A DNA stretch of 64,000 nt from Oopsacas minuta (taxonomy: Eukaryota > Animalia > Porifera): contig JAKMXF010000318.1 in the NCBI GenBank assembly GCA_024704765.1, positions 62,001 through 126,000 of the forward strand, given 5' to 3'. The stretch's first letter is position 1, and the number at the start of each line of letters is the position of its first letter. Made by a program: the position numbers and the translations under genes. The notes below the pieces were generated by a model, which worked only from the letters and a program-made list of their open reading frames with translations, was not told the origin of the DNA and ran no database searches. Shown one piece after another: positions 9,006 through 47,200 of the stretch.

Positions 9006-9250
9006 AATTACAAGCTAGAAGGCTAACTAAAGGTTATTGAAGTGATGTAAAATTATATGAATATTTCATCGTGAGGTCAATGATATAATATTAGTAATAG
9101 TATTCTATGAAAAGACCAAGGTACAGATGCGAAATTATGAGAATTGAGAGTCCTGCAATATAATACTAAACTTCAAAAATTGTGGTTATAATAAAATACT
9201 AGTAACTTGTATAACCTAGAATTCACCGTGTATTTACTACAACTACTATA

Positions 9251-17800: not shown

Positions 17801-20800
17801 TTCCTCAATCAATATTTGTGCAAAATATCATTTGTAATCAATCTGCTATATTCCAGTTAATATTCTTAACTACAATTCTGTAAGTAACTCGCTATTTATA
17901 CTGAATTATTATTGCCTACATTCAATTTCATTATTAGTAGAACTCAGTTAGTACGTACTAGGGTTGAATTACGTACACTCGGTTAGTAGTTGATCGTACG
18001 TGTAGTTTGCTCCAAATCTGGTTATACTAATTGTACAAGAAGAATATTCGGATAAGACGTACTACAGTTAGTACGTGCTATTTTCGTTCCGAGAGGGTAA
18101 TTCTTATCCGAGTTAGACTGTATACATCCTGAAGTTTGTAAATATTCAAATATTCGTATTATGTAATTGCTATTTAGGTCAGATAATCTCAAATTTAACG
18201 AATACTTCCGTCATAATCAGTTTAATCACTCCGATACCATCCGATGCTATAATACAGAGCTATAGGGTAAGCATCTAATAATTTTAATATGCAATAATTC
18301 TATCATTTTTGTATTCACAATATATATTTCTAGATTACAATTTCTGGAGCAAAACTGTATGACCTTGACTACACAGAAACTCGTAATGCTATCTTAGTCA
18401 ATTCATCTGTAACTCAGCTTAAACTTGACGAACTAACTCCTGATACTCTATATACACTTATTATAGTATCTCTCGATAGTATGGGAGTATTTCTTACGAC
18501 CACTTCTGTATCAGTACATACAGAGCCTGGAGGTAAGCCTTATCAGTTGTTGCAAAATCAGTAATGACATATTCATTACATTTTAATTGAGATTGTCTAC
18601 AGGGCAACTTTCACAAACGGGACCTGTGGAAACAGGGAACGGTGTGACAATAAATATAGTGAATTCCTAGTCCATATAAATCGACCTCCATAAACTGGGA
18701 AATAGCCAAACTCGTGAAAACTTAGTAGCATTTTTTCGGCTTCCCTCACCTCTTTTGGATGGAGGTTTCACTGTATTTATAAAAAATGCGATTTAACATC
18801 TCTTGTAGTATTGATCGAGTATATTATATAATTTAGTGCTGAATGTTACCAACCCTGTCATCTGGAGCACTCCTCTTAGAGGTCTCCAATCTATTCTCCT
18901 TAATCTTGAAGGAACTTCTAATAGAAACGCAGAAATCTTGTAAGTTTATTGCTGAGCAAAAATACAAAGAATGTTGTATTTATTATTTTTATCTCTATAG
19001 ATATCATTTACTATTTATGGTTGAAGTACCAGTCAGTTTTGATACAGATTTGTTCGATATAATCGCTTTTCTTACAAACGGAAAATCGCGAAATTCGCGT
19101 GATACCTCAGCACTTAAGAGTGTGATACAACTGTCTATTGTCGCGAATATTTCTACCCAAACCTGCGATTCATTTCCTAACTTCTTACTTATTGGAGATA
19201 ATCGCGGAATTACACCCTGCGACTTTTCACAACTACAAAATCTCACAAATTACACTGACAAAATCCAAACAGATTTCAGTCCCGAATTAGAGTTTAACTA
19301 CAAATATGCTTTCGTGTTAACTGCATCAACAAGAAATGAGGTCAGTTCACGAGTTCAGTAACTCACAGATGTTTCTTTCAAATAAGTCCTTGCAATTTAT
19401 ATATACCTTTTTAGATCATATACTATTCACCTGTATCCGAATTTATAAGTAAGTTCGAATTATATTGCGATATAAATATTACCTATGTGTGGTTACGGTG
19501 AAATATTTTGCCTACTTAATAATCCATTATACCTGTATTGTAAGCTTTTTACATTTATGTTTTTATGATAAAGACCTTGCTTGATTCTATCTAGGCTTAT
19601 TACCTGAGGAAACTGATGGATTTGATTTTGGTATCATATACACTATTGTGGCGGTAGGGATTGTCTTCATACTGTTTCTACTGAGTGTTCTACTTATTTA
19701 TTGTCTAATACGTTTTGGGTAAGTCACTTTTGGAATTTTCAAATATTTGGCCATTTCACTCTACATATATGTCGGTGGCCGATGTTGTCGTGGAGATTTT
19801 TCTATACACTTTTCAGTGTTGGAAAAGGTCATTTTCCTTGATTAGTGAAAGGTCTCGCCGACGATTCATAAGTAAAGCTTTGGCAATTTATGCCCCATTT
19901 ACCTGAAATTTTTGTAGTAGGAAATTGTTTAAGAAACGTCGTTCTCCACCAAAACAAGAAGAATCACAGATGTTAGCTGCAATAGACCTTTCTTTAACTA
20001 CATCAAAAGGGTCTATTGCATTTGTCAATCCTCTTTTCAAAACCCTTGAAGAGCCTAATCGTATTCCTATTTCTTTAGCACCATTTGAGGGTAATGATCC
20101 ATTCTGAAATTCATTCCCCCAATTCATCCTTAAAATGTTGATTTTATCTACAGAGCTTGCGAAGAATACTTTTTGTATTAAGTCAGAATTTGTTATTCAC
20201 ATAGATGAGTTCGGCGAGCATGTTAGAGAACTACATGATAATTTTAATCAAGGGTTTACACAAGAATATAATGTAAGCTGTGTTTGTTTGAATAATGTTC
20301 TCTTAATTGTTATAACCTAAATATTCAGTTTGTATCCAAATTTACCAAATACTATGTACATTCAACTCCTGTTATATTAATCACGGATATATCGAGGTCT
20401 GGAATTGTACAAATATGGTCCCAAACGTAAAGTATCATAATTTCATCAAGTATCTCGACTCCGCTGATATTGAAGTAATTATCCTTTTAGCTTCGATGTA
20501 ACGGGAGTTGACTGTGTTTGAAATAGGAGTTTTGGAGATATTATTCATGATATTTACTTCCTTATACATCCTTATAATTACATTAATATATCTAGCGGCT
20601 ATATGAAAGACGTCAATCAGATGCTATTGTAGCTCAAAAACCCTGTAACAGACATCTGAATAGATTTGTAGATATCTTTCCTTGTGAGTTTATTACTATG
20701 GCTAGTTAGAAATTAGTATTCCCTCAACAAAACATTACATTTTATCATGTTTTGCATACAATAACCCATTTTTGTCTGTAAGTAATTTTTTTAGTTCCAA

Positions 20801-23800
20801 ATTTGTCCAATTAACTTTTCTAATACTTCCTTATACATGTCTAATATTTACATGATTCTGTTGATACTTTTAGACGATGATTCACGAGTTGTGCTTACGC
20901 CAATCTCTGAATCTGACCACGATTATATCAATGCTTCCTTTCTAAATGTAAGTTAGTTATTTTCTGTTAAAGGTATGCTTGATTTGAATAACTGACTAAT
21001 GCGCATAAACTGATGTGGCAATTTTGAGGAATGTATTTTGGGAATTATTGATACGGTTAACTATGATTCTAGGGATATGATAGAGAAAGAAATTACATCG
21101 CAACACAAGGTAAGCATATGCTTCTAGCATAATTACTCCAGGTGGTGAATGACTATGTTTATATCATCTTATTAATTGATCATCTGCAAAGCCTAAACTG
21201 GCCAAGACATCACCTAAATGACCGCTTGGCTCGCCATTGAAATTTACGTGGTTTTCTGTATTTTGAAACGAGACAGTTTTATTTGTTCCTGTGGTTTAAG
21301 AATTCCAATATAGAATTTTGTTTGCGAATCTCTCTGGATTTGTGCAACGAATCAGCACTTTATTACTGCCACATGTAAACAATGTTTTGTTTGATAATTT
21401 TGCTCTCATTTTAATTTGCTGATGATACACAATTGTAAAAGCTAGGAGACGCAAGATTAAAACGTAAAGGCTTGCATTTTCAAATTAGGAATGTTTCTAT
21501 TAAAAGATTAAACACATATAAATTACTATTTTCCCAATTCAAGGCCGTAGCAAGCAGATTTCTGTTGGTTTGGTTGACTTAAACAGAATTTATTGAGCTC
21601 AATGTTGGTCCGGTTGAAACTTGACCAACCGGGCCGTCTTCTATGGCCATGCTAAACATATACCGGTCGTACTCGATTGCAAACAGACCGCTCAAAGCCA
21701 GACAACAAATTTCAATTGTCGCAATAGGAATTTTGAATATAATTATATATGAAAACAGTCACTGAATAATTACTTTTATTTTAGAGCCACATTTAAATTT
21801 TAATTACTTAATACTCACGGTTAACAATGGTATAGCGTTATAGAACTATATTAACTTTGAATACAGTATTCGCCACTAGCTGGTTACAAATTAACAAGCA
21901 TTATTTTGACTTATTTTGCATAATCTCTTTTATGTATATTTGGGCTATGCAGTTGCTTCACGTGTCTTAATCTGTTTTAACTAAGTTCTGATTATTGAAC
22001 AAACCTTTAATCAATCTTAACCATTAATTCAATTTAATATATGTAACCACTCTATGGAGAGACTAAATGCAATGATTTATTCATTATAATTATTTATACT
22101 TTTCAAGCAAATTTGTCTAATTGTTTTTGTAATTAAATGCATAAGCCTTGAGGCAGAACTAATCAACCATCGAACTTCACATGCTTTACACTAAAAATAT
22201 TCAAATCAGTAACTCATTTGTAATTTGTTATGAGTTTCAAACGCCCTCTTGTTAAATATTCATTGTTAATATTTTGTAAAGTAATATTTACTCTCCAGCT
22301 GATCTACTATTACATATTGGTACTTATACACTATAGCGAATTCCAAGTATCGTATGTGGTATATTTATAAATATTATCAACTATGTGTAAAAAACTCATA
22401 CAATATTGTAGTAGTAATTCTTATGATACACGTGCTCTACTTTATATGTTTGATAGTAATTGAACTCGGTTTCAATTTGTAGACTCTTTATGTTCAATAT
22501 CATATAATATTGATTATACTTTCAATTTAGTTTGTCTAAATATACTTTTGTTATGTAACTGTTACTTTCTTATTATTGTTTATTGGTGTGTTTAGCTCCA
22601 TTTATGGACATGATTGTTGATTTCTGGCGTCAATGTTGGGAGTATAATATTGCTGTAATTGCACTGCTAACTGATTCTATTGAAGGAAGAAAGGTAGGTT
22701 GTATTTTCGAATTTACAGTACTTGTACGCGCTGAATTCGGTAATAATTTACTGTACAGACAATTCCCGTTGTATTGAACACGGATACAGCTAAATACCCG
22801 TATATAACTAAACCCCAAATTATACTAATATGGTCCCAAACTGTCTAGGTTAAATACATCCCATCGGTTATATCGAGGTAATTATCGCGGTTCCTTGAGC
22901 TTTGATATAACGAGAGTTGACTGTATTCTTATTCCCAATTTAAACACAAGAAATTACTAAAAGGAAGTTTATTTTAATAGATATATTTGTGCCTTTTAAA
23001 ATACTCCCACGCAACGTTTCTGCACTAAAATGCTATTCTAAACTAGTAATACACACATTATTTATTAATATAGCGTTTCACGCGTGTTAGGAGGTTAATT
23101 ATTAATTTTACAGTTTCCAATTAAATTTCAATAAAACACATATTTTTAAGCAAGCAAAAGCATTATTTCGCAATTATTATTAACATTCCTTTTACCCAGA
23201 ATTATTTTATACTTTCAACAAAAGTTTTTTGAATTTAATAATTAAAGTGTATCAGTCGTTTAGTGAAAGAAGTTCATTTTTATACTTTCCGATTGAATTG
23301 AATATTTATTCTTATTCCCTTATGAAACTAACTATCTTAATTACATACCACAGTAAATTCTTTAAGTCATTTGATTTTCTAAATGTTTCCGCAATCTCGA
23401 GAATATTTTTGGGAATTAATATTATTCTCAGATATAAATTTTTTGATATAGTAATCTCTAGTTAAAACATTTATGAATAGAATTTCAATACAATAATACA
23501 ATTAATATACCGCGATATTTCATACAAATATATGATGGAATCTTTTTGTAATTTTTTAACAATTTTCCTTTCTATTAGACTCGAAACTACTATTATTGGC
23601 CAGAAGACCTTACAACAGAGATATCATTCGGCCCATTTGTAATTAAACTCACAGATATTCTAATAAAGCCTAGCTTCATACGAAGAGCATTATTATTAAA
23701 GGTAAAATTCAGTTTACTATTACTTCGCTTTCCTTGATCGATATTCAGTAAATATTTTATGAAAACTCAGCCACATATACAGTCTGTGTCACACTTTTTT

Positions 23801-26800
23801 AATTATTATCACTACGAATATAATCATTTCTTATCTCTCGAATTATTGCGGTCCCATTAAAGGAAATGATCTTTATATTTTACAAGCATTATCTATAATG
23901 AATATTTATCAATTATATGTCTAGCTTATTAATTACAAAACTAATCTATATTGTTATTCCAAAGAAGTTTGTATACTTGTTACTAATTACTTCTCTTCTA
24001 TCAGACTTGATTATTAGATTAATTTTCAAACTTTTGCGCTACCTTTTAGTTTCTCTTGGAATATCCAAAGTAGTATACGATACAGTATATCTCATATTGA
24101 AAGATATTGTCTTGTGTTTTTAATTAGTTGCTTACATATAGAAATGAAACTAATAGCGGTAATGAAACTTGAAATGGCCTAATCTCAACTGGTAATGGCC
24201 TAATATTGTACACTAGAGACTCGAATCTAGTTCCATTTCTGATTTCTTTGCTGTATATATAAACCAAGTTTTAAAATTAACTATATAGTTAGATCGTTAT
24301 TATTTCAAATTCCTGTTAATTTACTTTCAGTTGTAATAAAATCAAAAGTATTTATAAACAAAATGTCTACCAGTATTGAGAAAAGTCAAATATTCCCTGA
24401 ACAGAAGTTCAATACTGTTGTCACCTGTTCGAATAGTGTTGATACCTCTTCACTCCTTCCAATTGTAATGTCTCAACCAAATGCACAACCAGAGCCTGTT
24501 TGCATCGTAATTACAGACCCGAATCAACCGAAACAATACTCTAATTCGATCCTCTCCGTTCCAAACGTGATTTCCTACTCCAACCCTATCATCCCGAATT
24601 TGTACTACCTTGGACAAGATATTCCAAATATTGTGCCTGCTACGCCTCCAGGTACAGAGTCCAATATTTCTGTTGTTACACCTACTAAGACGGAAATACC
24701 TCTTGTCAATAATCATGGCTTCTTCCCAATACCTTTATCGCAACCTCAACTTGCAAAGAAACCTCTATTATCGAGTTCGAATATTGAAAATCACCATTCC
24801 AGCACTTCGTCTTGTGAAACAATTAGCGAAAAAACTCTTTCTGGAAACGATCAAGGCTATAAAATACTAGATAAAAGGCTTAGAGTGATGGAAGGACTCA
24901 TGAAGCAATCTATTAAATTACAGAAGAGAACATTGAGACACCAAGAGCGAATGGAAAAAATTATACAGCATTGTATGAAGGCTAAGTATGAAGAACAAAC
25001 TGTTGCTTCCGGTACCAATCGAATGGTACATTTCCAGCGATACTTGAATGATGCGCAACCTCCTCCGTTATTTCGTTATTCTAGCCATCCTGAGAATATC
25101 GTAGTGCCTGTTATTGAGAGTTCATCTCCGAGTGATTCTCCTACTCTGTACTTTGAACCCCAGAAGGAAGACTCGATCTCTCCTAACCTCACGATTGATA
25201 TGAGCTTAATGGAAGCGGCGGAACATAAATCACCGCATAAATACCACTCACATAGCTGTTCAATGTACAACAAGTCAATTCGTGATTTCAATGATGTTGA
25301 AACGATTCAGTGGTTAGATCGTATTCTCACTATTCTTGGGCTTGGAGTAACAGTGGAAAAAATTCAAGAAGTTTTATCACAGACAAACACGATCACTCAC
25401 TTTACTGCTGAGTTTCAAAAAGTTGTTTTCTCAAACCATGAACGGAAAACTCTAACTACAAGTGGGAAATTCCGTAAACGGAAGTTGGAAAGGATTGTGC
25501 TCGGGCCGCTAGATGGGAGTAAGCTCCAGGGCATAATACAGCTGAGTTTGTATTTGTTCGGTGTTGCTGAGAGAGATGAAGATAGAGTGAAGTACCAACT
25601 CAAACAAGCGATTGATGAAAAAAATCGCAGGGAATTTTATCGTGAAGATCGTGGGACTAAAAGGGTACACTTGTCATCAATTCCTAACTAAAATTGAATG
25701 AATAGAATACTAATGTAATCACTAAAATAATATTTTCTCTTGTTTTTCCATTTCTACAGCCTTTGCGGTTGTGACTTCCAACGTTCTTATTTGTTTTACC
25801 TTCTCTAGTTTGCTTTATGTATTTTCAGTAATCTCTTTACAATTATGTAAATACAAATTGTTTGTCAAATTGTTGATTCGCAATGAATATTCTCTAATAA
25901 TTATTCCTAAAATTATAATTAATTATTTAAAATATATTATTCCGGAAAATGACAAGTTTATTAATCTCTAATGAATTCTAAATAAATTGTTTTATTGTGT
26001 TAATCGTGTTTTTCCCTTTTCTTTAGAACATACTTTTTCCCAATGAAACACGGCGAATTAATCAATTCCATTACATTTCTTGGCCAGACACTAGTATGCC
26101 AGAGATCAGTTCTTTTCTGAACTTCCATACAATTGTGAGCTCTTTCTATAAATCTCAAAAGCAGAGCGGTCCTTTACTGGTTCATTGCAGGTTTGTGGAA
26201 TTTCTATTTTCTCTTTGCGACCGCGATTGCTCTATCCGATCAGGACTTATTCACTATAGGCATTCCGCTTTTGCCATGCGGATATTATTAAATGTACAGT
26301 GGTGTTCGCCTATTAGCAATATTTGTCAAGTTTTTTCATGGATTTAGAGTCCATTTTGTGTTGGAAATAATTCCTCAAATAACAAGTTCGCGTATTAGCA
26401 AGGAATTCGTGATAATATGACTTGCTGATAGGTGGACTCTTGAGATAAGGACTGGAAATCTTGTATCCTCAATCGTAAATTGTAGCAGGCTTCTACTTTG
26501 ATCTCATAGATATAAAAATTCGGTCCCAATTCACCCAGCGAATAAATCCTTTCTAATAACTTCGTTTGATGTATAATTATCAAATTCCTGTTTACAAATA
26601 TTTTCTGTATTTTGTTGGAGCTCATCCTAGTCACAAATATGGCCTTCCACATGCTGGGAAAATATATTGTCTAATTGTACATTAATTCTTGCGAGAAGAT
26701 GTTTCTAAATATGGTGAATATATTAGGTTTGAAGGTTAAAGTATTACTGAATTCGATGATAGGTCATTATATACAATTGATAAAATGAGTTTTACTCAGG

Positions 26801-28016
26801 TTTAGAGCACTCGTGGGGGCTTGTGGCTCAACTTCATGAGGTTATTGTCCAATTCAAGATTTCTTCCCAACAATTTCCTGTCAAACTTACTAATTAATTT
26901 CATTCTATAGACAATGGAAGTGTCTTTGCGGAGATTCTGCAGTTAAAATTACTTATCTTTAATTATTCAGTATTTATCATATTTTGCATATGGCCATTTC
27001 TGGTTATTGATCCTTCTTCATTGCAAAATATGTTAACATAACCACACAGCAATAGCTCAACTGATTATAATGTTTATGGTTAAGTCACAAATAATATTTG
27101 ACTTAAAGTGTGTGTATATCCTCTTGATACTAACTGAATTCTTTGAGGAATAAGTTAAACTGAGCGAAGAGAATGTGCAAAGGAGCAAACGCAGCCTGTA
27201 CTATCCTGTCTCATGCAAGTACTACCCGAGGGAAAGTCACTTTCCTTTAGGCTCATATCGTATACAATATATATCTAGAGCACGTGATAGGGAACTACCC
27301 AATTGATTAACTATAGTTAATAGGTCTATATTCTCCTAATTAACTTAATTACCCTATTATAGGTTGAAAGTGTTCCATTACGTAATTTGTTAATTACTAA
27401 TGATTTTAAGACATTGGGGCTGTTATTGCAGGTTCCACTGTAGTTTGATACTGGTAATTATTCAATTAAGAGGAGTTGAGGTATTACGTATTCAGTTAAG
27501 TGCTCTGATTCTAATTTCTAAGGCTCCGAATTTGATGGAAAACGAGCTAGAAGAAACTAGTGTTGATTTATTGTACAGTCAACTCTCTTATATCGAAGCT
27601 CAAGGGACCGCGATAGTTACTTCGTTACAAGCGGAGTTCGATTTAACAGATATAATATATGTTACTTTGACGTTTTGGGACCATTTTTTCACACTTTCAG
27701 ACTTCCATATAAGCGTATATTTCGAAATTTCAGTCTTTGATATAACGGAAGTTGACTGTATTCATTAATATGTTAACTATTTCCCTGAATAATTCGCTGG
27801 GGTTTGAATAAGCGTCTACCCAAACTAGTGAATAAAAATAGAATTTATCCCTGGAAATTTTACACATAATATAACCCAATTGGGATAGTCAAACTTCTAA
27901 AGTTGTCGTTATTCTTTTCAAGGAAATAGCGTAGTTTTAAATATATTGTGCGTATTTGGGGGAAACAGACTTCTGTTGACATTAATTTTTAATGATGGAG
28001 AAGGCCTAACCGATTC

Positions 28017-28083
<67 letters not shown>

Positions 28084-31000
28084 GTAGAGATCTTGAAGCA
28101 TACTTACTTTCTTTAAACTTTTGGCAAAGTATTTGAGTAGGAAACTATCAAGGAGAGCTTCCCATATCTACTCCAACATAATTTTGAAATATTTTGAGAA
28201 CTTGTACATAATTATGTGAAATAAAGATTTCTTACTTTGCATAACTATTTTGCTAAACTAATCATTTGTTTGGGAAAGGGTCAGTTATGCAAAGTTAAGC
28301 TTTAATTAGCAAAACCTATACAAGGTTATGTAAATCTTATTAACTTTGTGTGTTGGCAAGTAAACAATGAAGGAATGTTGCATAATAATATTTATTCACC
28401 AAGTATGTATACGTATTTCCCTGTATACTTTTCATTAATTAAGCAGGAACCCCGGCCACAATCACATTAAGTAATATCTGATTTTATTATTTGTGGCTTA
28501 AAAATAACCGTTTTCCTCTTGTCGTTCACATAATTTACATTCTGCAATCGTGTATAATGTATTTTGCTTTCAGGATCCATATATGGCATTCTAGTTTATA
28601 ATTGTTATTACTTATTCAGTGTGAAACGTCAATAAATTAAAATCTGTCCAATCGAATTTACAGAACTTAATCGTGTACTTGTTTTGTCTGATTTCCCGCT
28701 GTAAAGTTTGCGATTGTTATTGTGTACTTTCAGGTGTTGCGTATGTGTCTATCTGTTAACGACCCTTGTATCATATTTCTGGTATGCTTGAATAATTGGT
28801 TCAAGTTCTATGAAGTATTTAGGGACTGATATTTTAAGTTCCCCGAATATAATAATAACTATTGTATTATGGCTAACACAATTATGCTACTAATAATAAT
28901 AATAACCACATTATTCAATTTGCTAACCATTTGGCTTAGGTATAGTTTCAATCAGGCGATATGTGATTAATCCTTCACAATATGAAATTCGATCCCTTTA
29001 TAAATTATCACACCATAATTTGCAATCAAGAATTTCATATATTTCACTTTGCGGATTATTTAAAGATTATTTAGCAAGGATTTATTTTGTATATTATTTA
29101 GGTCTGGTGCTGGTGCAAGTGCGGTTTTCATATTCTTAGATATTTTACGCACGCAAGCTCATGCAGAAAATCAGATAGATATCCACAGGTGTATCACTAC
29201 TATGCGATCCATGCGCTCCAGGATGGTCTGCTCTATGGTATGTACGTCTCCATTCGTCATGATAAACCTACACTAATTAACTGGCTATCAAATTTTAGTC
29301 TTGGAATTTGATTTATCAAATTTCTTATCTCTATTCTTTGAATGTCAAGTATATTAGGATGACTAAACAAGTTGTGTATTTGATGATGACGATACATTCC
29401 GAATATGTTGCATTATCCAAATTACTGTACACCCTCGCTAATCCGAATAACACTGTTCCAATTGCGAAATAATTCGTTCAGATTGGTCAATACATTGAAA
29501 TAATACTATAAGAGCTAGGAGTACATTTTTTCCAAGGTTACAACCGAATAGTTCAATATTTGGTTAACAAGCGGATATCAATATTCGGTCAAGCAACTAT
29601 TCATGAATACTGATATCCGGTCAGATTGGTTTAAACCTTGATTTTTTAGAAAGTTGTACAAACGATGAAAAGGCTGTAGTAGAATTGGATACAAATGAAT
29701 CCTTTTGAAAATTTGCTTGAATTATGTATTTTGACAGGAGTACTACATTTACGCACATGATTTATTACTTGCTTCCCTAATCTGTGGAAACACATGTATT
29801 GATGCTCCTTCATATCCACATCGAATCAAGAAACTATCTGAGGTAGACTCGAGAACACATGCTACTGGTTACAACACTGAATATATCGTGAGTTAATCTG
29901 TTAATTTAACTAACAACAGGGTTAATTTGTAATGGTGAAGAGCAAAATAGTTATATTAATTAGAATTGTCTATTGAACTCCATTATAACGTAATGCTTAA
30001 ACACTCGTATTGTATAAGGGACATTTGGACTAGAGTGATACATTTTAAAGTCGATTTACAATTTTAATCTTAAATATGAAGGAATTGATGTTATCGTTAA
30101 TCTTGTTGACTTAGACATTAGATCAAATATCAAATTCGCCTCAAGACTACCCACATACACTGGCTCAAGAAAATCCTACAATGAATAGAAAGATAGAATT
30201 CCTTCCAAGTAAGATTAAATATTTCTAACAAAGATCACATTTTTATAGATTATCATCCATTTTTGTAGTAGACTCAAGATGCGTAAGCTTATCTCATGGC
30301 GAGTATATTAATGCTACATTTGTGAATGTAAGTTATTGAAACTGAATGTTTATTATAATTTTTACCAAATTTTGAAATTGATAATAATTAGGGTTATGAA
30401 CGTGAAAATGCATTCATCATTGCTGAGTCACCATTGATTAACACAGTTGGGCGTTTTTGGCAATTAATATTCGAGCATAGATGTCGTGCAGTGATCACGT
30501 TATGTGATCTTACACAAGACCAACAGGTAACTTTATAATGTAATATCAGAACTAATTGCTGATTAATACCTAATATTTAGTTAATACAAATTGTAATACA
30601 GTTTTTTTGTAATTCATTTAGGAAGTTGGTGCTAAATATTGGATGGAGTCGGGAGAACCAGTTACCTATAGAGATCTTACTGTGCAATTATCTAATATCA
30701 TCCACCCAGAGCATGGAGCATACACAATTCACACATTTATGTTAACATCTGCAAGAATAAAGGTGATTCATACTTTCAGTTTGTTTAATTACAGGTTAAT
30801 TAAGTTCTGGTAGTTTGCTTAACTGATTTTTGAACTTCTAATTTATTCCATGTTTGTGTGAGTGGAATATTATTTTACAAATAGTTAAGATAATTTGACC
30901 TAAAACTGTTAAACTTCGATATGATTAACGCATGTCTCCATTTGTAGCATGACATATGATTTGCGGTTAGTATTCAGCAAATTCTCATTACTTAATATTA

Positions 31001-34000
31001 AATAATTATTTAAGTGGATTTTGAGTGTATTTACCAACGAAATGTTGGCATAGGATGTATTGCTATATACTAATTTACTTGAGTATTTTTACAATTATTT
31101 CAAGCGTATATGCTATGTTTCAATCTATTCATTGTTAATATTAAGTCAAATTCTTATTTTGCTATGTAGGCTATTAATATTGTAAATTGTAACCAAGGAT
31201 ATAAGCAGTGTTTATTTCTGCAAGGTTGCAATAGCCATATCTGTTAAAATCTGCGATACGATACAATATATCTGAAAATACCCGATACGATAAATATCGG
31301 TAAGATATATTAAAATAGAAAAATATCGAAAATGTCTGAAAATATCAAAAATAGGGAAAATAGCTGGAAAATACGGGAAAAGATGGAAATCTCGATATCG
31401 ATATTTCCGATAAAATACCGGATTGTAAGATGTTTTGGATGTTTTTCATTTCCGATATGTCGGTATCAAACCTTGATTTTTGCATGCTTTTTGAGTGGAA
31501 CAAAGTACGTATTTTTCGTGTAAATTTACCGTGTTGTTGATTACAATGTTAGCATAAAATGGTAACTGCTTCGGATAAGGTTTCAAATTTCTTGCCTCTT
31601 GCACGCCCTGTTGCAATGGAAGTAGCACCTGTTGGTTATTGGTACATACAACATGTTCTGAACACAAACAACACAGTTTTATCTGAGAATCTTCCATCTA
31701 AAATCGATATCCCTGAAGATGGTGATCAAATTGAAAGTTCTGATATTTCAAAATTGTTGTTAGATTCGGCTGATCCAATTGACCTTGCTCTCCTTGACCC
31801 TACTGCATGGAAATCTCAGGACCATTATAAACTACTCGGCCTTGGCCAGAAAAGATATAAAGCAACCATGGATGAGATAAAAACGGCGTACAGGAATAAA
31901 GTTATCAAACATCACCCGGATAAAATGAACACCAAATCAGTGGTTCCTTCAAACGAAAATGAAGATGAACAAGCAAGCAAAGAACTGACTTTAGAAGAAA
32001 AATATTTTCAATGTATCGTTAAAGCACATGAAATTCTATCCAATCTATCAAAACGTAGAGCTTACGATAGTACTGATCCTTTCTTTGATGATTATATACC
32101 AGAACCTGATGACATCATTGATGAAGATTTCTTCTCTGTACTTAAACCTGTTTTTGAAAGGAATTCACACTTTTCTACTCTTCAGCCTGTGCCAGATATT
32201 GGAGACATAAATACACCTTACACAGAAGTGCAGGACTTTTATAGATTTTGGTTTGGATTCAATTCATGGCGTGAATTCTCCTATCTTGACGATGAAGAGT
32301 TCGATCCTGAAAAAGCAGAAAAACGAGAGGAGAAACGTTGGCTCGCGAAACAAAACAAACATGGAAGAGCTCAATTAAAGAAAAATGAAATACAGCGTAT
32401 TATTAAGCTAGTTGAGGTAGCCTTTGCTAATGATCCTCGTGTGCTAAAAGCTGAAGAAGAAGAGAAAAAGAGAAAAGATGACGAGAAGAGAATGAAACAA
32501 GAGAGACTCGCAAAAGAACATGAAGAGAGGGAAAGGAAGAAGAAAGAGAAAGAAGATATAGAATTGAGAGAAAGAGAAGAACGTGCAGAAATTGAAAGAT
32601 TGCAAGAAATTGAAGATAAGAAGCAACGCGAAGAGAGGAAACAAGCTTTTAAAAGACAGCGTAATGAATTTAAAACAGCTTGTAGTAAACAAAACAATTT
32701 CTCTACAACTCATATAAATAGTGCTTCTGCAGAAATAACGCAGAATATTATTGAAATCGAGAATTTATGTCAAGCTTTGACATTGGAAGAACTGACAGTT
32801 TGTACAAAGAGGATCAGTAGTGAACCTCAGTTTGAAGCTTCTAAAGCTATCTTTGAAGAATATGTTTGTAGTATGAGAGATAAGCAGGAAGAAGAGATGA
32901 AGAAATCTTTGACACAGACTGGTGGCGCACAAGGTATGTGCATTTTTGTAATTTTACAACTGAGTGTCGTTACTACAGTAAAACCTTCGTACATTTTCCA
33001 TCTTTTATTTTGTAATTTTGTTGTGGCGAGCAAACAAGAACAATTTGTTCGAAAATGATGTGAAATATGGTCAACGGATATATTGAAAAACCCGCTTATA
33101 TTGAAATCTGAAATTGTACAAATATGGCCCCAAACCGTCGAAGTAACAAATTTTCATCGGTTATATCAAACAGTAATTCTCGCAGTCCCTTGAGCTTCGA
33201 TATAACGGGAGTTGAATGTAATTGTAATTAATAGCTACTGCATATTATCTTTTAGGGAAGAAAAAGGATCAACTCAAACATGACGATTGGACCGCTGAAG
33301 AAACACAGCTGCTTGTGAAAGCTGTTACTCTCTACCCAGCTGGTACTCAAGCACGTTGGGATGTTATAGCAAACTACATCAATAAACACAGTACTAGCGA
33401 TATTAAGAAAACTGGTAAACAAGTAATAACTAGAGTCAAGTGTTTACAGAAAACTGATGGTAAAGAAGCAATTAAATCCGATGCACAGGCATTTTCGTTA
33501 TTCGAAAAATCACAGGGACATAAAGCACAGATTTCTTCCGAAAAAACTATTAACTATGAGGCAGCTGTGGTTAATATATCATGGACAAGTGCTGAACAGA
33601 AATTATTGGAAGAAGGTTTGCGTACTTTTCTAGCTACAGATGCAGAAAGGTGGGAGAAAATCGCGAAAAAAGTTGGCACCCGGGATGAGAAAGATTGCAA
33701 AAGAAGATTCAAAGAGATCGTAGCAAGTTTACAGGCTAAAAAGGCAGCAACTAAAAGCTAATTTCCTGTTTAGTAGTGAATCTCACAATATTAGTTTGTA
33801 GAAAGTTGTTGCTATTGATTGTTTGTAAAATCATACATTTATTTGTAAAACACACACACAGATACGTTTTTATCATTTGTAATCTTAGGGTGGCTTTGAA
33901 GTAAAACAGTTTATCTATCACGAGTTTGATGAAAACTTCCTTCCTGCGAATTCTAACAACTTTGTAAAGCTCATTACTCAAGTTATAGATCTCTATTCTG

Positions 34001-36086
34001 ATGAGAAGACTGATCCCATCCTAGTCCACTGCGGGTGAGTGTCTTAAAGTTGAATTTTTTATTTATAAATTCGATAAAGTAATGGGCGAATAACTGAGCT
34101 AGATATCGAATTTAATTTGGTATAAGATAGTAAATTTGATATTTTACCCTGTTGTATGCAAAAGGAGATCCAGACCAGTGTTGCTAGATGATGTGCGTAG
34201 AAAGTTCATACCATCTTCTTGCCAAAACTAAGATTTCATACCATATGCCAAAATCTATGAACTCCATCATCTGGCAAAACTACCCGGATTTTCACCGCCT
34301 ACCCAAATAATAAAGCGCTGAATAGGAATATATAATACGTGGAACAATAAATTTGCAATAAATATGTTGTTATACGTTTTGAGATAAACTGGAAGAAAGT
34401 TAGAGATAAATAGGATATCGTAGCTAGTCTAAACACAAAAATTCAGTTGTGGAAACCATGGATTAGCGCTGCCTATTTTGTTGCTCGAAAAACATAAAAT
34501 CAATCAGGAAGCAAGCGCCCATCACTACGGCTTTCACGCGTACATCCAAATCCATAGGGAATTTGATGCCAAAGTTATCAGCATCAGTGAAATATTCCCT
34601 AGCAAGGCCACTCCACTGCTTTGATACTTTTCCAACGCTGGTACCATCTACTGCCGTTACATCAAAATCAATATCAGAGCACCATCTACAACATAATGCG
34701 ATACAGTTACCAGTGATATTAAGTATTTCTCGCTCTTCAGCATCAAGTACAGTGAATTTAGGATTCCAGAAGGTACAGTCTTGTCTCACGTAGCCTACTA
34801 TTTGACCGGGAGGCGATTGAACTTCCATTTTCTGTAGACAGCAGAAACAACACCAGGCTGAGCATCTATACGGGCGTACAATATGAATGACTTCGTGCTG
34901 TGTATTGTCCATGATTGACATCTCAAATGGCCGGTTAGGTCCGCAATACTGTCTAGCACAGCAATTACTGTTCTCAGCTGCGAAATAGATCTGCTGACCG
35001 AGCGTGTTTTTTATGACGTAGCGATTTGCAGTCTCCCAACCTGTCATTAGTTCCCATAGTTCAACCTGTTGGTGTACTAGGATCTGATCTATCTGAGTCA
35101 GGTACTCCAGTCCAGGAGGGCAATTAGCCACTGCTTGCGGGGGAGGCATCCACTCTACTGTTTTAGTCTGTGGTGCACCTGGAGGAGCAGGGGGAACTTG
35201 ACCTTGTTGATACCCCTGGGGTGGCTGTGCGTACCCTTGAGGTGGTTGTGCGTACCCTTGAGGTGGCTGTGCGTACCCTTGGGGTGGTTGTGCGTAGCCC
35301 TGAGGAGGTGGGGCACCTTGTCCTGGAGGTATTGCTGACATTCTATTAGCTAGAAATTAAAGTATCCTATTTATATTTATAATATAATCAATAAATTTAT
35401 TAACATTTATACTTATTTAGTGATACCGTAGGATGTTCTGGAATGTTCTGTGCCTCGCTATACTCTATCGAGCGACTGCTTGCAGAAAATGAAGTAGATG
35501 TGTTCGGATGTGTGCGACAACTGAGGAAAGATAAGCCAGGCATTATACCTACTCTTGTAAGTATAAAAGAATATTATTTCACCAATCATGGTTGAATTCT
35601 AAGTAGCTGTATCAAGTTACAGATATTTTAAGTACCAAGAATTCTAGCAAGTGTTGTGTTGATGTGAAACACGTGTGTATGTTTATAAAATTGAGCTTCT
35701 CAGGTTAATTACAAGCCTAGAGCCCCCCTGATAATTATTTATGTATACGTATAATTAATTTATTCTCAAAAGGCTTCTTGCACGTGGTAATAATAAATGT
35801 AGTAGGAATTCAGTGTGACAAGGAAAGTTTAGAAAAAATAACGTCCTATACAGAAATACTTTATGGAATTGCAGAAATTTGGTAGCCTTTTTGATAAGTA
35901 GGGGTCACCCGCTCAGCACTGCTTGCAATTAATCGACATTGATACGCAGTTTATCTACACCCTAGTATTTTGAAAGGCGGTAAAAACAAAGCTTTTCCAA
36001 TCGATATTTTTTCATTCCTCTATTTTCTTTAGACACACTACAAGGGTATCTACAAGACGATTTTATCCTTCATCATTATTAATTGA
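11871..36086 (+). CDS. Receptor-type protein tyrosine (pseudo)phosphatase: signal peptide, 12 Ig-like, 2 FN3, membrane-proximal domain, TM, PTP D1, PTP D2
   Basis: Signal exon 11871-11931; Ig exons ~11992-17116; FN3 exons ~17345-18531; TM exon ~19595-19718 (IIYTIVAVGIVFILFLLSVLLIYCLIR). D1 exons include ~20593 (NRFVDIFP), ~20873 (DYINAS), ~21073 (YIATQ), ~22596 (DFWRQCWE), ~23579-23701, 26027-26190 (SWPD..LLVHC) and 29102-29237. D2 exons include ~30269 (YINATF), ~30392, ~30623-30762, 33889-34034 (ILVHCG), 35421-35556 and 36033-36086 (YKTILSF, stop). The junctions I checked keep frame. Confidence 0.88.
13814..13987 (+). CDS. 57-aa single-TM microprotein, COX14-like, nested in receptor PTP intron 13576-14200
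   Basis: ATG tct ctt...gaa TAG encodes MSLLTKLFAPQNGYKVGYVCFSIIMGYAIYGSYQTGQGISNAVERMRTKEGTALKQE. GYK, a hydrophobic helix, YG.Y and a charged tail resemble COX14 as I recall it. Below the ORF-track size cutoff. Confidence 0.55.
   Translation: MSLLTKLFAPQNGYKVGYVCFSIIMGYAIYGSYQTGQGISNAVERMRTKEGTALKQE
18600..18773 (-). mobile_element. MITE family B copy (TIR ~CAGTGTAACCTC..CAAACGG, TA TSD)
   Basis: ta|cagggcaactttcacaaacggg ... ggaggtttcactg|ta, inside a receptor PTP intron. Confidence 0.75.
20359..20514 (+). mobile_element. MITE family A copy (TIR CAGTCAACTCCCGTTATATCGAA)
   Basis: ta|cattcaactcctgttatat...ttgtacaaatatggtcccaaa...ttcgatgtaacgggagttgactg. Confidence 0.85.
22756..22923 (+). 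mobile_element. MITE family A copy
   Basis: ta|cagacaattcccgttgtattgaa...tttgatataacgagagttgactg|ta. Confidence 0.85.
24363..25691 (+). CDS. Coiled-coil plus BEN-domain-like protein, nested in receptor PTP intron 23702-26026
   Basis: Intact intronless 442-aa ORF with a low-complexity N-terminus and coiled coil (LDKRLRVMEGLMKQSIKLQKR). The C-terminal VVFSNHE..TLTTSG...PLDGSKLQGII....F....LKQAIDEKNRR fits the BEN-domain pattern (by eye). Confidence 0.7.
   Translation: MSTSIEKSQIFPEQKFNTVVTCSNSVDTSSLLPIVMSQPNAQPEPVCIVITDPNQPKQYSNSILSVPNVISYSNPIIPNLYYLGQDIPNIVPATPPGTESNISVVTPTKTEIPLVNNHGFFPIPLSQPQLAKKPLLSSSNIENHHSSTSSCETISEKTLSGNDQGYKILDKRLRVMEGLMKQSIKLQKRTLRHQERMEKIIQHCMKAKYEEQTVASGTNRMVHFQRYLNDAQPPPLFRYSSHPENIVVPVIESSSPSDSPTLYFEPQKEDSISPNLTIDMSLMEAAEHKSPHKYHSHSCSMYNKSIRDFNDVETIQWLDRILTILGLGVTVEKIQEVLSQTNTITHFTAEFQKVVFSNHERKTLTTSGKFRKRKLERIVLGPLDGSKLQGIIQLSLYLFGVAERDEDRVKYQLKQAIDEKNRREFYREDRGTKRVHLSSIPN
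26230..26710 (-). pseudogene. Decayed reading frame of unknown origin
   Basis: One frame reads protein-like with interspersed stops: KHLLARINVQLDNIFSQHVEGHICD*DELQQNTENICKQEFDNYTSNEVIRKDLFAG*IGTEFLYL*DQSRSLLQFTIEDTRFPVLISRV. Confidence 0.3.
27576..27758 (-). mobile_element. MITE family A copy (reverse orientation)
   Basis: ta|cagtcaactctcttatatcgaagctcaagggacc...tttgatataacggaagttgactg|ta. Confidence 0.88.
28017..28080. repeat. (AAT)n microsatellite, about 21 units
   Basis: Uninterrupted aat tract. Confidence 0.98.
28081..28855 (-). mobile_element. Possible 5'-truncated, decayed non-LTR retrotransposon ending in the (ATT)n tract
   Basis: Minus-strand stop-riddled frame (...IKFCKFDWTDFNLLTFH...IAECKLCERQEENGYF) resembles the Cys-rich ORF2 C-terminus of LINEs. 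It is followed by an (ATT)n tail. Confidence 0.3.
31221..31475. mobile_element. Putative TIR element with gatacga/gatatcga subterminal motifs
   Basis: caaggttgcaatagccatatctg ... ccgatatgtcggtatcaaaccttg form imperfect inverted ends with repeated gatacgata/gatatcgata motifs. No clean TSD. Confidence 0.45.
31559..33761 (+). CDS. DNAJC2: DnaJ subfamily C member 2 (MPP11/zuotin), nested in receptor PTP intron 30763-33888
   Basis: J domain (QDHYKLLGL...HHPDK), zuotin domain (FYRFWFGFNSWREFSYLD), charged coiled coil and two SANT domains. Exons 31559-32933 and 33256-33761 join in frame. Confidence 0.95.
33075..33218 (+). mobile_element. MITE family A copy (left TIR lost), in the DNAJC2 intron
   Basis: aaacccgcttatattgaaatctgaaattgtacaaatatggccccaaacc...ttcgatataacgggagttgaatg|ta. 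Confidence 0.8.
34176..34282. mobile_element. Small TIR element (CAGTGTTGCCAGATG-type ends)
   Basis: cagtgttgctagatgatg ... catcatctggcaaaacta inverted pair with an internal duplicated ttcataccat..gccaaaa. TSD not recognisable. Confidence 0.45.
34463..35341 (-). CDS. PLSCR: Phospholipid scramblase A, nested antisense in receptor PTP intron 34035-35420
   Basis: CPPGLEYLTQIDQILVHQQVEL, Cys-rich CSAWCCFCC, FTDADNFGIKFPMDLDVRVKAVVMGACFLIDFMFFE. N-terminal PPQGYAQ repeats (21 bp, ~5 copies). Intronless. Confidence 0.95.
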   Translation of the reverse strand: MSAIPPGQGAPPPQGYAQPPQGYAQPPQGYAQPPQGYAQPPQGYQQGQVPPAPPGAPQTKTVEWMPPPQAVANCPPGLEYLTQIDQILVHQQVELWELMTGWETANRYVIKNTLGQQIYFAAENSNCCARQYCGPNRPFEMSIMDNTQHEVIHIVRPYRCSAWCCFCCLQKMEVQSPPGQIVGYVRQDCTFWNPKFTVLDAEEREILNITGNCIALCCRWCSDIDFDVTAVDGTSVGKVSKQWSGLAREYFTDADNFGIKFPMDLDVRVKAVVMGACFLIDFMFFEQQNRQR

Positions 36087-44200: not shown

Positions 44201-47200
44201 CATACCTGGGTACACCAGATACAGGACATACAGATAATTTCAGTCGCTTAAGCTGTGTATGTTCCCTAGAGAATATTTGGCTCCATCTAGCCGGTATATC
44301 TCTATCTAATCTCGTACTTTCACACAGACAGAATTTATCATCTCTTACAAGTATTGTAACACAGGGTAACTCGCTTACTCTTGATATTGGGCTATGGTTT
44401 GGCTTGCCTACTCTACCTAATGTAACTTTGTACAAAGAGAATGATGCTGTAATCAGTAACAGAGACATAATGCATAAGCTGATTGGACTTAAGAATAAGC
44501 AGGAGTATCTACTTCCCATCGTTGTATGGACTACTATCCTCTCTATAGGTAAACACATCGCTATACCAACTTAAATATTTCCTAGATTTAAAAGGCAGGG
44601 GTAATGAAACGCATAAACTAACGAACAATTTTATTCCCACGCGAAATGCAGATATATTGTATAAGTTTACAGATAGGCGGATACGTCATTATGAATTGAT
44701 ATTACGAAGGTTGTATATATTATCAAATATATTGAATTATATTAATTGTATGTATCTGGATGTTAGGTAGAAAAGGCCTGATCAGTACAGTAGACTATGC
44801 TATGGGTATAGCTACCGCTATAATACAAGGACTATGTGATATACATTCTATCAAACTGATATCTCCGGAACATGCTAGCTTTATGATAAGGTTCGGTTAT
44901 AAAGGCCCTCCCTTCTTATTGAAGAGAGGTAATGATACTACTCAGGGAGCTACAGAAGAGCCTACACAGTATCTACCTGTAGAGGTAAGGCTTTTAAGGG
45001 ATATAATCACTACGTGTAGGAGTTGAAATGTTTTTTGAAAATTTTTCAAAAATTGTGTTTTACAACCATCGTCTAAAGTTTCACAGAGAGCCGAAAACTG
45101 CCATTTACACTGTGCAACCGAATTATAATACACATGCATAAACTTAATAGTTATACGATTCTCAATACAAGTACACTATCATAAGTAATTCGCAATAATC
45201 TTCACTACACATAGAACACACATCAATTCTGCTGTATATTCTGCCTATAGTATGTCCTCACTGCATTCATTTGTTCAGCACACATTCTTATATGACTCCT
45301 CCTCTCCCTAATCCTCATTACAGCTTCATCTGGTGTTATCCCATGCTTATCCATTAAGTAGCAGGCTACTACTGTTGTACTACGCCCTCTACCTGCTTTA
45401 CAATGTACATACACACTTTTACCACTTAAACCTATCTCATTTATGAAATCTATTCCTAATTGGATGTTTTCTTGAGTCGGTGCACGGAAGAAATCTACTG
45501 TAGGGAGATGGCGTTGGATTATGTTTCTAGCTCTCCACTCATCAGCTGTTGGCATTGTGTGTTTTATCTCAAAACTTTCATTCATTGTAAGCACTCCACC
45601 TATATTTTCATTATAAATGTCTGGTAAGAATGTTCGTAGAGGAAGAGCACCAAGAACTACCTGATTGTCTACCCTGTCGAACCAGCGACGTGTTTCACAT
45701 CTGTTCAAGTAGTTGAATAGGAGAGATGGATAGAAGAATACACGCGAGTATATCCTAGCGAAAAGTTCTAGGAAGAATCCTGGCATTGTAATAATAATAA
45801 TAATAATATAATTCTAATTGGATTAAATAATATGAATAAATTTGTGAGTTACAATGGCCTCTGTATATTTGGGATATTTTCACTAAAGATATAAGCTCAT
45901 ACAATTTTGAATTTATTTTTAGATAACAAATGACTTTTTCGATGTAATAAGTGAATCTTTGCTACCAGACTTTCCTACTTTAAATCTGATAGAGGGTCCT
46001 GAAACGAATGAGCTTCGATACTTCACGATAGATGTGTATCACTGTTTCACTCAGTTAGGAGCTGGCTTGGAAGAAGTGGATAAGTTTATTAAGAAACTGA
46101 AGTTAATTACTGAGGAACTTGATGCTACTCTCTATACACGAGTGAAGATTAGTAAGCATTTTCATAAAGACATTAATTTGTCTGTAAAAGAAGTTAAAGG
46201 TAAGATATTCACAAATACATCAGTCAATTCTGGTGATATCGAAGCTCAAGAGATCGTGATAATTACTTAGATGACCGATGGAATATACAGTCAACTACCC
46301 GTTTTTATATCCAATTATGAACTTGTACAAATATGTTCTCAATATAAATTTCATCATATTGAACTCTGCTTATATTGAAGATTCGAAATAATTATCGCGG
46401 TCTCTAGAACTTGGATGTAACGGGAGTTGACTGTATTGTACTTCTCCATATTTCAAAAATAATTCTGACAAGCACCTGTGATAAATATGCCGTACTATGA
46501 ATAGAATGTCACTATCGTTACAAATTGTAATATATATCAATTTATCTAAAACAGGTCGTACATCAACAGCTTGTATCCACTATATGCCTACTAAACTAGT
46601 GAACTCTCCTGCCCTGAGACCTGAGCAGATAACAGAGCTCAATAAGGCTAATCGTAAACTAGCAACACATATGAGTGGAAAGCATCATGCGTATGGATAC
46701 TGTGTAATACAGGATTATGTGTATGTTGAGCTTGGTAGGATAAAACCAGGAGAACAACAGGATGTGCTGGAAACTTTCAATGAAATAAAAGAACAAGCAA
46801 ATCAGTGAGTATACATAGTTATGTCTACAAGAAATTGTATTAAATGGAGTTCAATTAATTTGAAGCATCTATATAGTATGTATTCTGATTTATGAACAAT
46901 GGAGAAAAATCTTCTAAAATTAATACTTTGTTCTACAAAAACTTCTCAAAATCTTACTATTATAATTCCCTACAGATTGGATGTAGATTCAGATCAGCTT
47001 GAGGTTCTCTCAGAGCAGGTAGCTGCAGTACTCTCTAACGCACAAGCAGAATTAGTAGAAGAACAAGATAGAGCCTTCTGGGATGAAGGATTAATACGTA
47101 AAGTCCCTTTAATCGGCTCTGTAGTTAACTGGTGGTCTCCTTACAATCCACAACCTACAGGACGTAGTTTTAACTTTATTTCCGGTAAGATGGAACCTAC

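Follow-up and report, generated by a model that had tools for sequence, protein, structure and literature searches.

A receptor-type protein tyrosine phosphatase (PTP) gene of the glass sponge Oopsacas minuta encodes two phosphatase domains, D1 and D2, and in both of them the arginine of the C-X5-R motif has been replaced. We read this gene, with a probability of roughly 0.75, as an intact, old, strongly diverged and long-retained non-catalytic receptor pseudophosphatase that carries immunoglobulin-like (Ig) and fibronectin type III (FN3) modules. The P-loop arginine binds phosphate and stabilises the transition state, and the Q-loop glutamine residues position the hydrolytic water. All classical PTPs have C-X5-R as their conserved catalytic core (PMC7320164). 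Both D1 and D2 retain the PTP fold with essential catalytic residues replaced, the pattern by which a pseudophosphatase is recognised, and the original prediction from the DNA alone, which held both domains to be catalytically dead, is supported as far as the sequence reaches, since the arginine and the Q-loop glutamines are gone in both.

With the arginine and both Q-loop glutamines lost, hydrolysis by D1 would be abolished, and D2 lacks even more. Without the arginine, neither domain would be expected to hydrolyse phosphotyrosine (pTyr) or to bind it well. Given that the phosphate-holding arginine has been lost from both domains, the protein is most likely a non-catalytic receptor. Its role would most likely be that of an adhesion, scaffold or decoy receptor, in which the ectodomain would bind a partner and the intracellular pseudo-domains would act as protein-protein docking modules, a function that D2 domains have in ordinary receptor PTPs and that D1 and D2 both have in PTPRU. 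Inactivity, retention by selection and the scaffold role are what we infer from the residues and gene structure described below.

The gene lies in a 64-kb stretch of the genome (G000:C318:62001-126000), referred to here as the window, and positions are counted within it unless another contig is named. The assembly that we used holds 61,460,524 bases in 365 contigs; the published glass sponge genome of O. minuta is 61.46 Mb in 365 scaffolds (PMC10282587). The contig is AT-rich (~34% G+C) and very compact.

Gene structure and loss of catalytic residues in D1

The gene has the layout of a tandem-domain receptor-type PTP, with a signal peptide, Ig/FN3 modules, one transmembrane segment, and D1 and D2 in one spliced frame. 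The features of the gene as far as D1 are as follows.

11871-36086, plus strand: whole receptor gene, with a signal-peptide exon, ~12 Ig-like phase-1 exons, FN3 exons, transmembrane exon, D1, D2 and stop
19595-19718, plus strand: transmembrane exon, carrying GIIYTIVAVGIVFILFLLSVLLIYCLI
20154-29887, plus strand: predicted D1 pseudophosphatase domain in 9 exons, delimited by splice sites, phases, colinear PF00102 pieces and positions in a local hidden Markov model (HMM)
20154-20272, 20596-20683, 20874-20947, 21073-21109, 22596-22693, 23579-23701, 26027-26190, 29102-29237 and 29738-29887, plus strand: D1 exons
20656-20667, plus strand: D1 pTyr-recognition motif LNRF (canonical KNRY)
26081-26089, plus strand: WPD of D1, kept, reading WPDTSMP (the Gly of WPDxGxP is Ser)
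26180-26190, plus strand: VHC of D1 (26180-26188) and bases 1 and 2 of the split Arg codon AG|G, with the donor GT at 26191
29102-29123, plus strand: remainder of the D1 P-loop, (R)SGAGASA, with the Ala codon GCA (29115-29117) in place of the invariant Arg
29223-29237, plus strand: first half of the D1 Q-loop, MVCSM (canonical MVQT), continuing as EYY at 29738-29746 (canonical xQY)

Counted from the transmembrane exon (19595-19718) as far as the stop codon at 36086, 18 of 18 exons have GT-AG borders and compatible phases, and when joined for a check of frame and stops they form one open frame whose single stop codon is terminal. The intact frame claimed in the original prediction is borne out over this span, but the gene end given there, 35556, falls one exon short, because the last exon (36033-36086) holds the THY remnant of the D2 Q-loop and the stop. 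The first exon (11871-11931) is hydrophobic and signal-peptide-like, and the Ig-like exons upstream of the membrane segment form a series of phase 1-1 with the pattern C…W…Y.C. All searches were run exon by exon. Against Pfam, the ectodomain gave one FN3 match above the cut-off (35.7 bits) and weak, sub-threshold Ig matches, and none of the ectodomain pieces scanned matched a MAM domain. Automatic exon chaining of the ectodomain recovered the signal-peptide and Ig-like exons; its FN3 and juxtamembrane part (~17.3-19.5 kb) is approximate and was not relied on.

The exon 26027-26190 encodes NILFPNETRRINQFHYISWPDTSMPEISSFLNFHTIVSSFYKSQKQSGPLLVHC and ends in CAT TGC AG|gtttgt, and the acceptor ttatttag precedes the exon at 29102, which opens with G TCT GGT GCT GGT GCA AGT GCG. 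The junction 26190/29102 is therefore a canonical GT-AG one with an intron in phase 2. Read directly, the D1 P-loop is VHC-R-S-G-A-G-A-S-A-V-F, in which the split codon AGG gives Arg at Cys+1 and the residue at Cys+6 is Ala. No Arg codon can be reached from GCA in fewer than two base changes, which excludes a single base-call error as the explanation. On the Pfam family PF00102 (Y_phosphatase), an alignment to which had been proposed as a check of the prediction, the exon pair flanking the P-loop intron occupies profile positions 130-176 and 179-221, so that the two pieces abut. When phmmer was run against the PDB, GAGASAVFI aligned without a gap to GVGRTGTFI of PTPRE D1 and to GVGRTGCFI of LAR D1. 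Given this gapless alignment to solved D1 P-loops, the invariant Arg of C-X5-R is Ala in D1.

Across the 29237/29738 splice the D1 Q-loop reads MVCSM|EYYIY as against MVQTxxQYxF. D1 consequently lacks the C-X5-R Arg, both Q-loop Gln residues and the Lys of KNRY, the Tyr of which is Phe. The PF00102 pieces of D1 follow one another in order (profile 10-36, 46-84, 130-176 and 179-221), and the local HMM placed every D1 and D2 exon in order. Although the Pfam scores of the pieces are low, four of the D1/D2 exon pieces pass the PF00102 cut-off of 20.9 bits individually.

Loss of catalytic residues in D2

The features of D2 are as follows.

30115-36086, plus strand: predicted D2 pseudophosphatase domain in 7 exons, delimited by splice sites, phases and Pfam pieces
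30115-30208, 30269-30327, 30392-30526, 30622-30762, 33889-34034, 35421-35556 and 36033-36086 (stop), plus strand: D2 exons
33925-33933, plus strand: FDE at the WPD position of D2
34024-34034, plus strand: VHC of D2 (34024-34032) and bases 1 and 2 of the split Gly codon, with the donor GT at 34035
35421-35442, plus strand: remainder of the D2 P-loop, (G)DTVGCSG, with the Cys codon TGT (35434-35436) in place of Arg

The exon 33889-34034 ends in VHC GG|gtgagt and the exon at 35421 opens with T GAT ACC GTA GGA TGT TCT GGA, which gives the P-loop VHC-G-D-T-V-G-C-S-G with Arg replaced by Cys. In the phmmer comparison with the PDB, VGCSG aligns without a gap to VGRTG of solved D2 domains. The D2 Q-loop reads IIPTL|THY, its final part lying in the exon 36033-36086, and MNRK stands at the KNRY position. 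D2 is thus without the Arg, the WPD motif, one P-loop Gly and both Q-loop Gln residues, and keeps the nucleophile Cys in VHC. Its PF00102 pieces cover profile positions 38-81 and 133-176, and a piece at 180-222 came from the scan of the sponge's own genome. The motifs that had been proposed for the two domains are all found on direct reading, namely VHCRSGAGASA across the intron 26191-29101, MVCSMEYY, LNRF and the kept WPD and Cys in D1, and VHCGDTVGCSG without a WPD in D2.

Search for an alternative P-loop exon and position of the P-loop intron

With all filters off, an HMM based on 15 canonical D1 domains of O. minuta was run on every stop-free segment of 12 or more residues from both strands of the 64-kb window. 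The P-loop region was matched only by the D1 and D2 exons and by an unrelated minus-strand PTPMT1-like gene near 45.4 kb. In a six-frame regular-expression scan of the window, G-x-G-R-[ST]-G was absent from the plus strand. An alternative exon restoring C(X)5R, named beforehand as a finding that would speak against inactivity, is accordingly absent from the window in both scans. The P-loop of the PTPMT1-like gene, VHCKAGRGRSTT at ~45382-45408 on the minus strand, is that of a canonical Cys-based phosphatase and provided the motif scans with an internal positive control.

Other intron-rich PTP genes of the genome likewise have an intron directly after VHC, in the identical position, and there the next exon begins with (S)AGVGRTG. 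This post-VHC intron is in phase 2 (codon AG|N) and is common to the intron-rich PTP genes of the sponge (loci L032, L036 and L039). Many fragments that read through as VHCR… were found in the protein library for other organisms, animals among them (for instance P0027, P0029, P0034, P0035, P0037 and P0040), and these observations suggest that the intron position is widely shared. It is missing from the many receptor PTP genes of the genome in which the PTP domains lie in one open frame. Given the same intron position in other PTP genes and the library fragments, the 26190/29102 junction is the one shared by genes of this type and not an artefact of reading.

Conservation pattern of D1 and D2

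To describe what the two domains have kept, we took 77 non-redundant active-like PTP domains, 61 of them from the library and 16 from this genome, and selected the 51 profile columns in which conservation was 85% or more. D1 keeps 38/51 of these columns and D2 25/51, the latter at the low end of D2-type domains. The library medians are 36 columns for non-canonical domains (mostly D2) and 49 for canonical ones, so that D1 lies within the range of long-lived non-canonical domains and below the canonical ones. The 13 losses of D1 are K21L, M79Q, V89A, M90L, K101R, C102N, S192R, A193S, R197A, G199A, Q235C, Q239Y and F242Y. Seven of them fall in the P-loop, Q-loop or pTyr loop. The other six include the Cys of the KCxxYWP motif, which we take to be the 'backdoor' cysteine; the rest are mostly conservative. 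The motifs DDSRVVL, DYINAS, YIATQ.P, DFW, YWP, WPD and P..VHC are intact in D1.

The retention of fold motifs together with the loss of active-site residues resembles the pattern of a pseudoenzyme rather than that of random decay, although it is not proof. A long, open and correctly spliced frame in which D1 still keeps 38 of the 51 columns argues for a retained gene. In addition, the gene is less than 50% identical to every relative and yet has kept all the splice sites, phases and frames that were checked, which is indirect evidence of a living gene.

Relatives in protein libraries and in the same genome

With the D1 WPD exon as query, phmmer (HMMER) gave 196 matches among 1.84 billion representative proteins. 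Of the top 40, every protein that contains an HC motif either shows a canonical HCx5R P-loop or is a fragment that stops at VHC, at the end of an exon. Exon-wise BLAST of all exons against 150 of the phmmer matches found no protein that was consistently high in identity, and the D1 WPD exon gave no confirmed match in JGI metagenome contigs. To library PTPs in general, the exons of the window gene show ~30-45% identity.

Within the genome, the D1 exons with WPD and the P-loop find their best matches on contig C77, at identities of 46% and 38%; the motifs there, WPDFGVP and SAGVGRSG, are canonical. As close paralogues for a comparison of nonsynonymous with synonymous substitution rates (dN/dS), the best exons, from C77 and elsewhere, were rejected, being 38-46% identical, all canonical and too distant. 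Neighbouring intron-rich PTP genes on the same contig as the window (C318:168 kb and 186-189 kb) have intron positions in common with it, but they are canonical and no more than ~30-37% identical, and they were rejected as recent duplicates. The closest paralogue lies on the minus strand of G000:C77 at ~467.5, 444.4-444.6, 420.5-420.7 and 355.4-355.6 kb (loci L037, L036, L035 and L038). Its exons follow the profile order on that strand (44-87, 120-189, 177-228, then a D2-like exon), and these PTP exons seem to form one gene spread over more than 110 kb, which would be a giant for a 61-Mb genome.

The genome holds at least 130 PF00102 matches. In the tandem receptors that we extracted, D1 nearly always has VHCSAGVGR[ST]G with WPD, and the Arg of D2, missing from most D2 domains of the genome, is commonly replaced by Lys, Met, Asn, Ala or Trp. 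Two tandem open reading frames (ORFs) depart from this in both domains.

G000:C321:52955-54478, minus strand: tandem ORF with VYSVTGSGQTG in D1 and VHCWDGVGKTG in D2, and no WPD in either domain
C321:49916-51472, minus strand: tandem ORF with CFVSkNSNSIIG in D1 and LQSINGSTKIG in D2, and no WPD in either domain

The two are adjacent, with open frames of 1083 and 682 amino acids (loci L028/L029 and L051), and belong to a PTP gene cluster at C321:36-54 kb in which each PTP domain lies in one open frame. Furthermore, a family of single-domain receptors in the genome carries IIHCEDGISKTG and has no catalytic Arg. Like the window gene, the C321 ORFs and the IIHCEDGISKTG family combine receptor-linked PTP domains with the absence of the catalytic Arg. 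They differ from it in that their PTP domains are uninterrupted in one long open frame and clustered on contigs, whereas the window gene is intron-rich; the D1 domains of the C321 ORFs have lost Cys and His, whereas D1 of the window gene keeps Cys and WPD. The window gene also shares its intron positions with the intron-rich PTP genes, stands without a close paralogue (identity per exon does not exceed 46%) and has an Ig/FN3 ectodomain. Predicted pseudo-PTP receptors are thus common in O. minuta, and the window gene is not exceptional in its own context. The original prediction had treated such a gene as an exception among tandem receptors; both of its domains are indeed non-canonical, but at least two other tandem genes of the genome are likewise, in addition to the single-domain pseudo-PTP family.

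Comparison with known pseudophosphatases

The closest known parallel is human PTPRU, a receptor of the R2B group. It is likewise a tandem-domain receptor PTP with an Ig/FN3-type adhesion ectodomain whose D1 and D2 are both inactive (a prediction in the sponge), and its D1 keeps the Cys. Described as a redox-sensitive pseudophosphatase, PTPRU has been proposed as a decoy or scaffold that binds substrates (PMC7320164). The C-X5-R Arg of PTPRU is present (R1091), and its inactivity comes from a disordered pTyr loop, a re-oriented PTP loop and WPE (PMC7320164), whereas in the sponge D1 the Arg and both Q-loop Gln residues are replaced and WPD is kept. The parallel drawn in the original prediction therefore stands for function, with both domains inactive or predicted to be so, but not for mechanism. 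The R2B receptors (PTPRU/K/M/T) differ further in their MAM domain, which had no match in the sponge ectodomain pieces scanned. PTPRU D1 is a weak PDB match to the sponge D1 (21 bits), below PTPRE, LAR and PTPRS. Identities of ~30-45% per exon to library PTPs in general point to an origin independent of PTPRU and not to orthology.

The best matches of the sponge D2 P-loop exon are the D2 domains of CD45, RPTP-alpha and RPTP-epsilon. The D2 of CD45 has Arg at Cys+1 and no Arg at Cys+6. In general, loss of Arg and WPD with VHC kept is common in ordinary D2 domains, both in this genome and among library proteins. The sponge gene differs from ordinary tandem receptor PTPs in that their D1 is active, whereas its own D1 has the same kind of defect as D2. 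IA-2/PTPRN and PTPRN2 are also receptor-type proteins with a PTP fold and putative pseudoenzymes, but have a single PTP domain and another ectodomain. They keep the P-loop Arg. Both are listed among the PTPs with altered catalytic or substrate-binding motifs that are putative pseudoenzymes (PMC7320164). Our literature search found nothing specific on pseudophosphatase receptor PTPs of sponges.

Alternative explanations

Several observations weigh against reading the gene as a long-retained, non-catalytic receptor. In D1 the nucleophilic Cys and the general-acid Asp are still present and an Arg is new at Cys+1, and with these three residues the domain may have a non-canonical activity. The excess of active-site losses in D1, which keeps 9/16 active-site columns as against 29/35 of the other conserved columns, is a trend and not a strong statistic. 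The 196 phmmer matches of the D1 WPD exon include no self match, none above 57% identity and no recognisable orthologue. As to D2, the stop codon of a same-strand nested gene (zuotin/DNAJC2-like) lies 127 nucleotides upstream of the exon at 33889, and we infer from unbroken frames and intact splice sites that the mature mRNA contains the last three D2 exons.

If D1 were still an enzyme with a non-canonical site, the Arg at Cys+1 or another basic residue would have to substitute for the lost one, and the substrate might not be phosphotyrosine. The Cys, the WPD and two P-loop Gly residues are retained, and the Arg stands where nearly all active domains have Ser. However, the losses in D1 extend to both Q-loop Gln residues and to the Lys and Tyr of KNRY, all six domains among the library matches in which Cys and WPD are kept but the Arg is missing are D2 domains, and we know of no case in the classical PTP fold in which the side chain at Cys+1 reaches the phosphate. 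Even though some PTPs with altered motifs have been reported to be active on specific substrates (PMC7320164), we consider an active D1 quite unlikely.

The gene could also be a pseudogene in early decay, its catalytic losses reflecting relaxed selection and its open frame being temporary, which would fit the negative orthologue search in the protein library and the JGI metagenomes, the low Pfam scores of the pieces and the 25/51 columns kept in D2. We regard this as very unlikely, because all 18 exons keep GT-AG borders, phases and open frames in an AT-rich genome despite identities below 50% to every paralogue, because the signal-peptide exon and many intact Ig-like exons of phase 1 stand upstream, and because DYINA, YIATQ.P, DFW, YWP, WPD and VHC are kept while active-site residues are lost, as is typical of pseudoenzymes and not of random decay. 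Finally, the gene model comes from genomic sequence, and its introns hold three nested genes, of which the zuotin/DNAJC2-like one lies on the same strand; the transcript might use other exons or splice sites or end before that nested gene, in which case the P-loops quoted here would not be in the protein. The shared position of the post-VHC intron in other PTP genes, the lack of an alternative P-loop exon in the HMM scan, the abutting profile coordinates and the open, phase-compatible D2 exons downstream make such an artefact highly improbable.

Receptor pseudophosphatases are an accepted but thinly sampled class, in which PTPRU has been described as unique among human receptor PTPs in having two dead domains. 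If the sponge gene is a long-retained pseudophosphatase receptor, phosphatase-dead adhesion receptors would have arisen early and repeatedly in animals, and by a route that differs from that of PTPRU, the direct loss of the C-X5-R Arg in D1. It would also offer a natural D1 variant for asking what the PTP pocket does after catalysis has been lost. The value of the case is limited by a conclusion drawn from sequence and by the many other pseudo-PTP receptors in the genome. A more far-reaching proposal, which looks unlikely, would be that double-inactive receptor PTPs of the sponge arose independently of vertebrate PTPRU and more than once in this genome (the window gene and C321), with D1 pocket chemistry retained for redox sensing through the Cys as in PTPRU, for residual non-canonical activity or for a ligand, and not as inert scaffolds; the kept Cys and WPD Asp and the Arg at Cys+1 in D1 would then speak for such a chemical role.

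Nested genes and neighbourhood of the receptor

Three of the receptor introns contain ORFs or genes that are not part of the receptor, and gene nesting is typical of glass-sponge genomes (PMC10282587).

24363-25691, plus strand: intact nested ORF of 442 amino acids, inside the D1 intron 23702-26026
31559-33761, plus strand: nested zuotin/DNAJC2-like gene, in the D2 intron 30763-33888 (ZUO1-like ZHD 127 bits, DnaJ 52 bits, RAC_head 43 bits)
34463-35341, minus strand: nested phospholipid scramblase gene, in the D2 intron 34035-35420 (PF03803, 297 bits)

The 442-amino-acid ORF matched no Pfam family at E <= 0.1. Neither AATAAA nor ATTAAA occurs in the 127 nucleotides between the stop of the zuotin/DNAJC2-like gene and the host exon at 33889, and on this gene model the host pre-mRNA must read through the 3′ end of the nested gene. 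The ATG of the scramblase gene is 79 nucleotides from the host exon at 35421, so its promoter or 5′ untranslated region must overlap that exon.

Elsewhere in the window, a long tandem array at 3570-4193 (plus frame) consists of ~14-residue units when read as protein (ADCCGVGEELRFIS) and is G-skewed, with a GC skew of 0.39 at 2-4 kb. A single-exon ORF of 633 amino acids at 2-1900 on the plus strand, cut by the window edge, looks by eye like a Na/Ca-exchanger-type membrane protein, and another of 710 amino acids at 9215-11344 on the plus strand, upstream of the receptor, looks by eye like a MutL/PMS-type protein.

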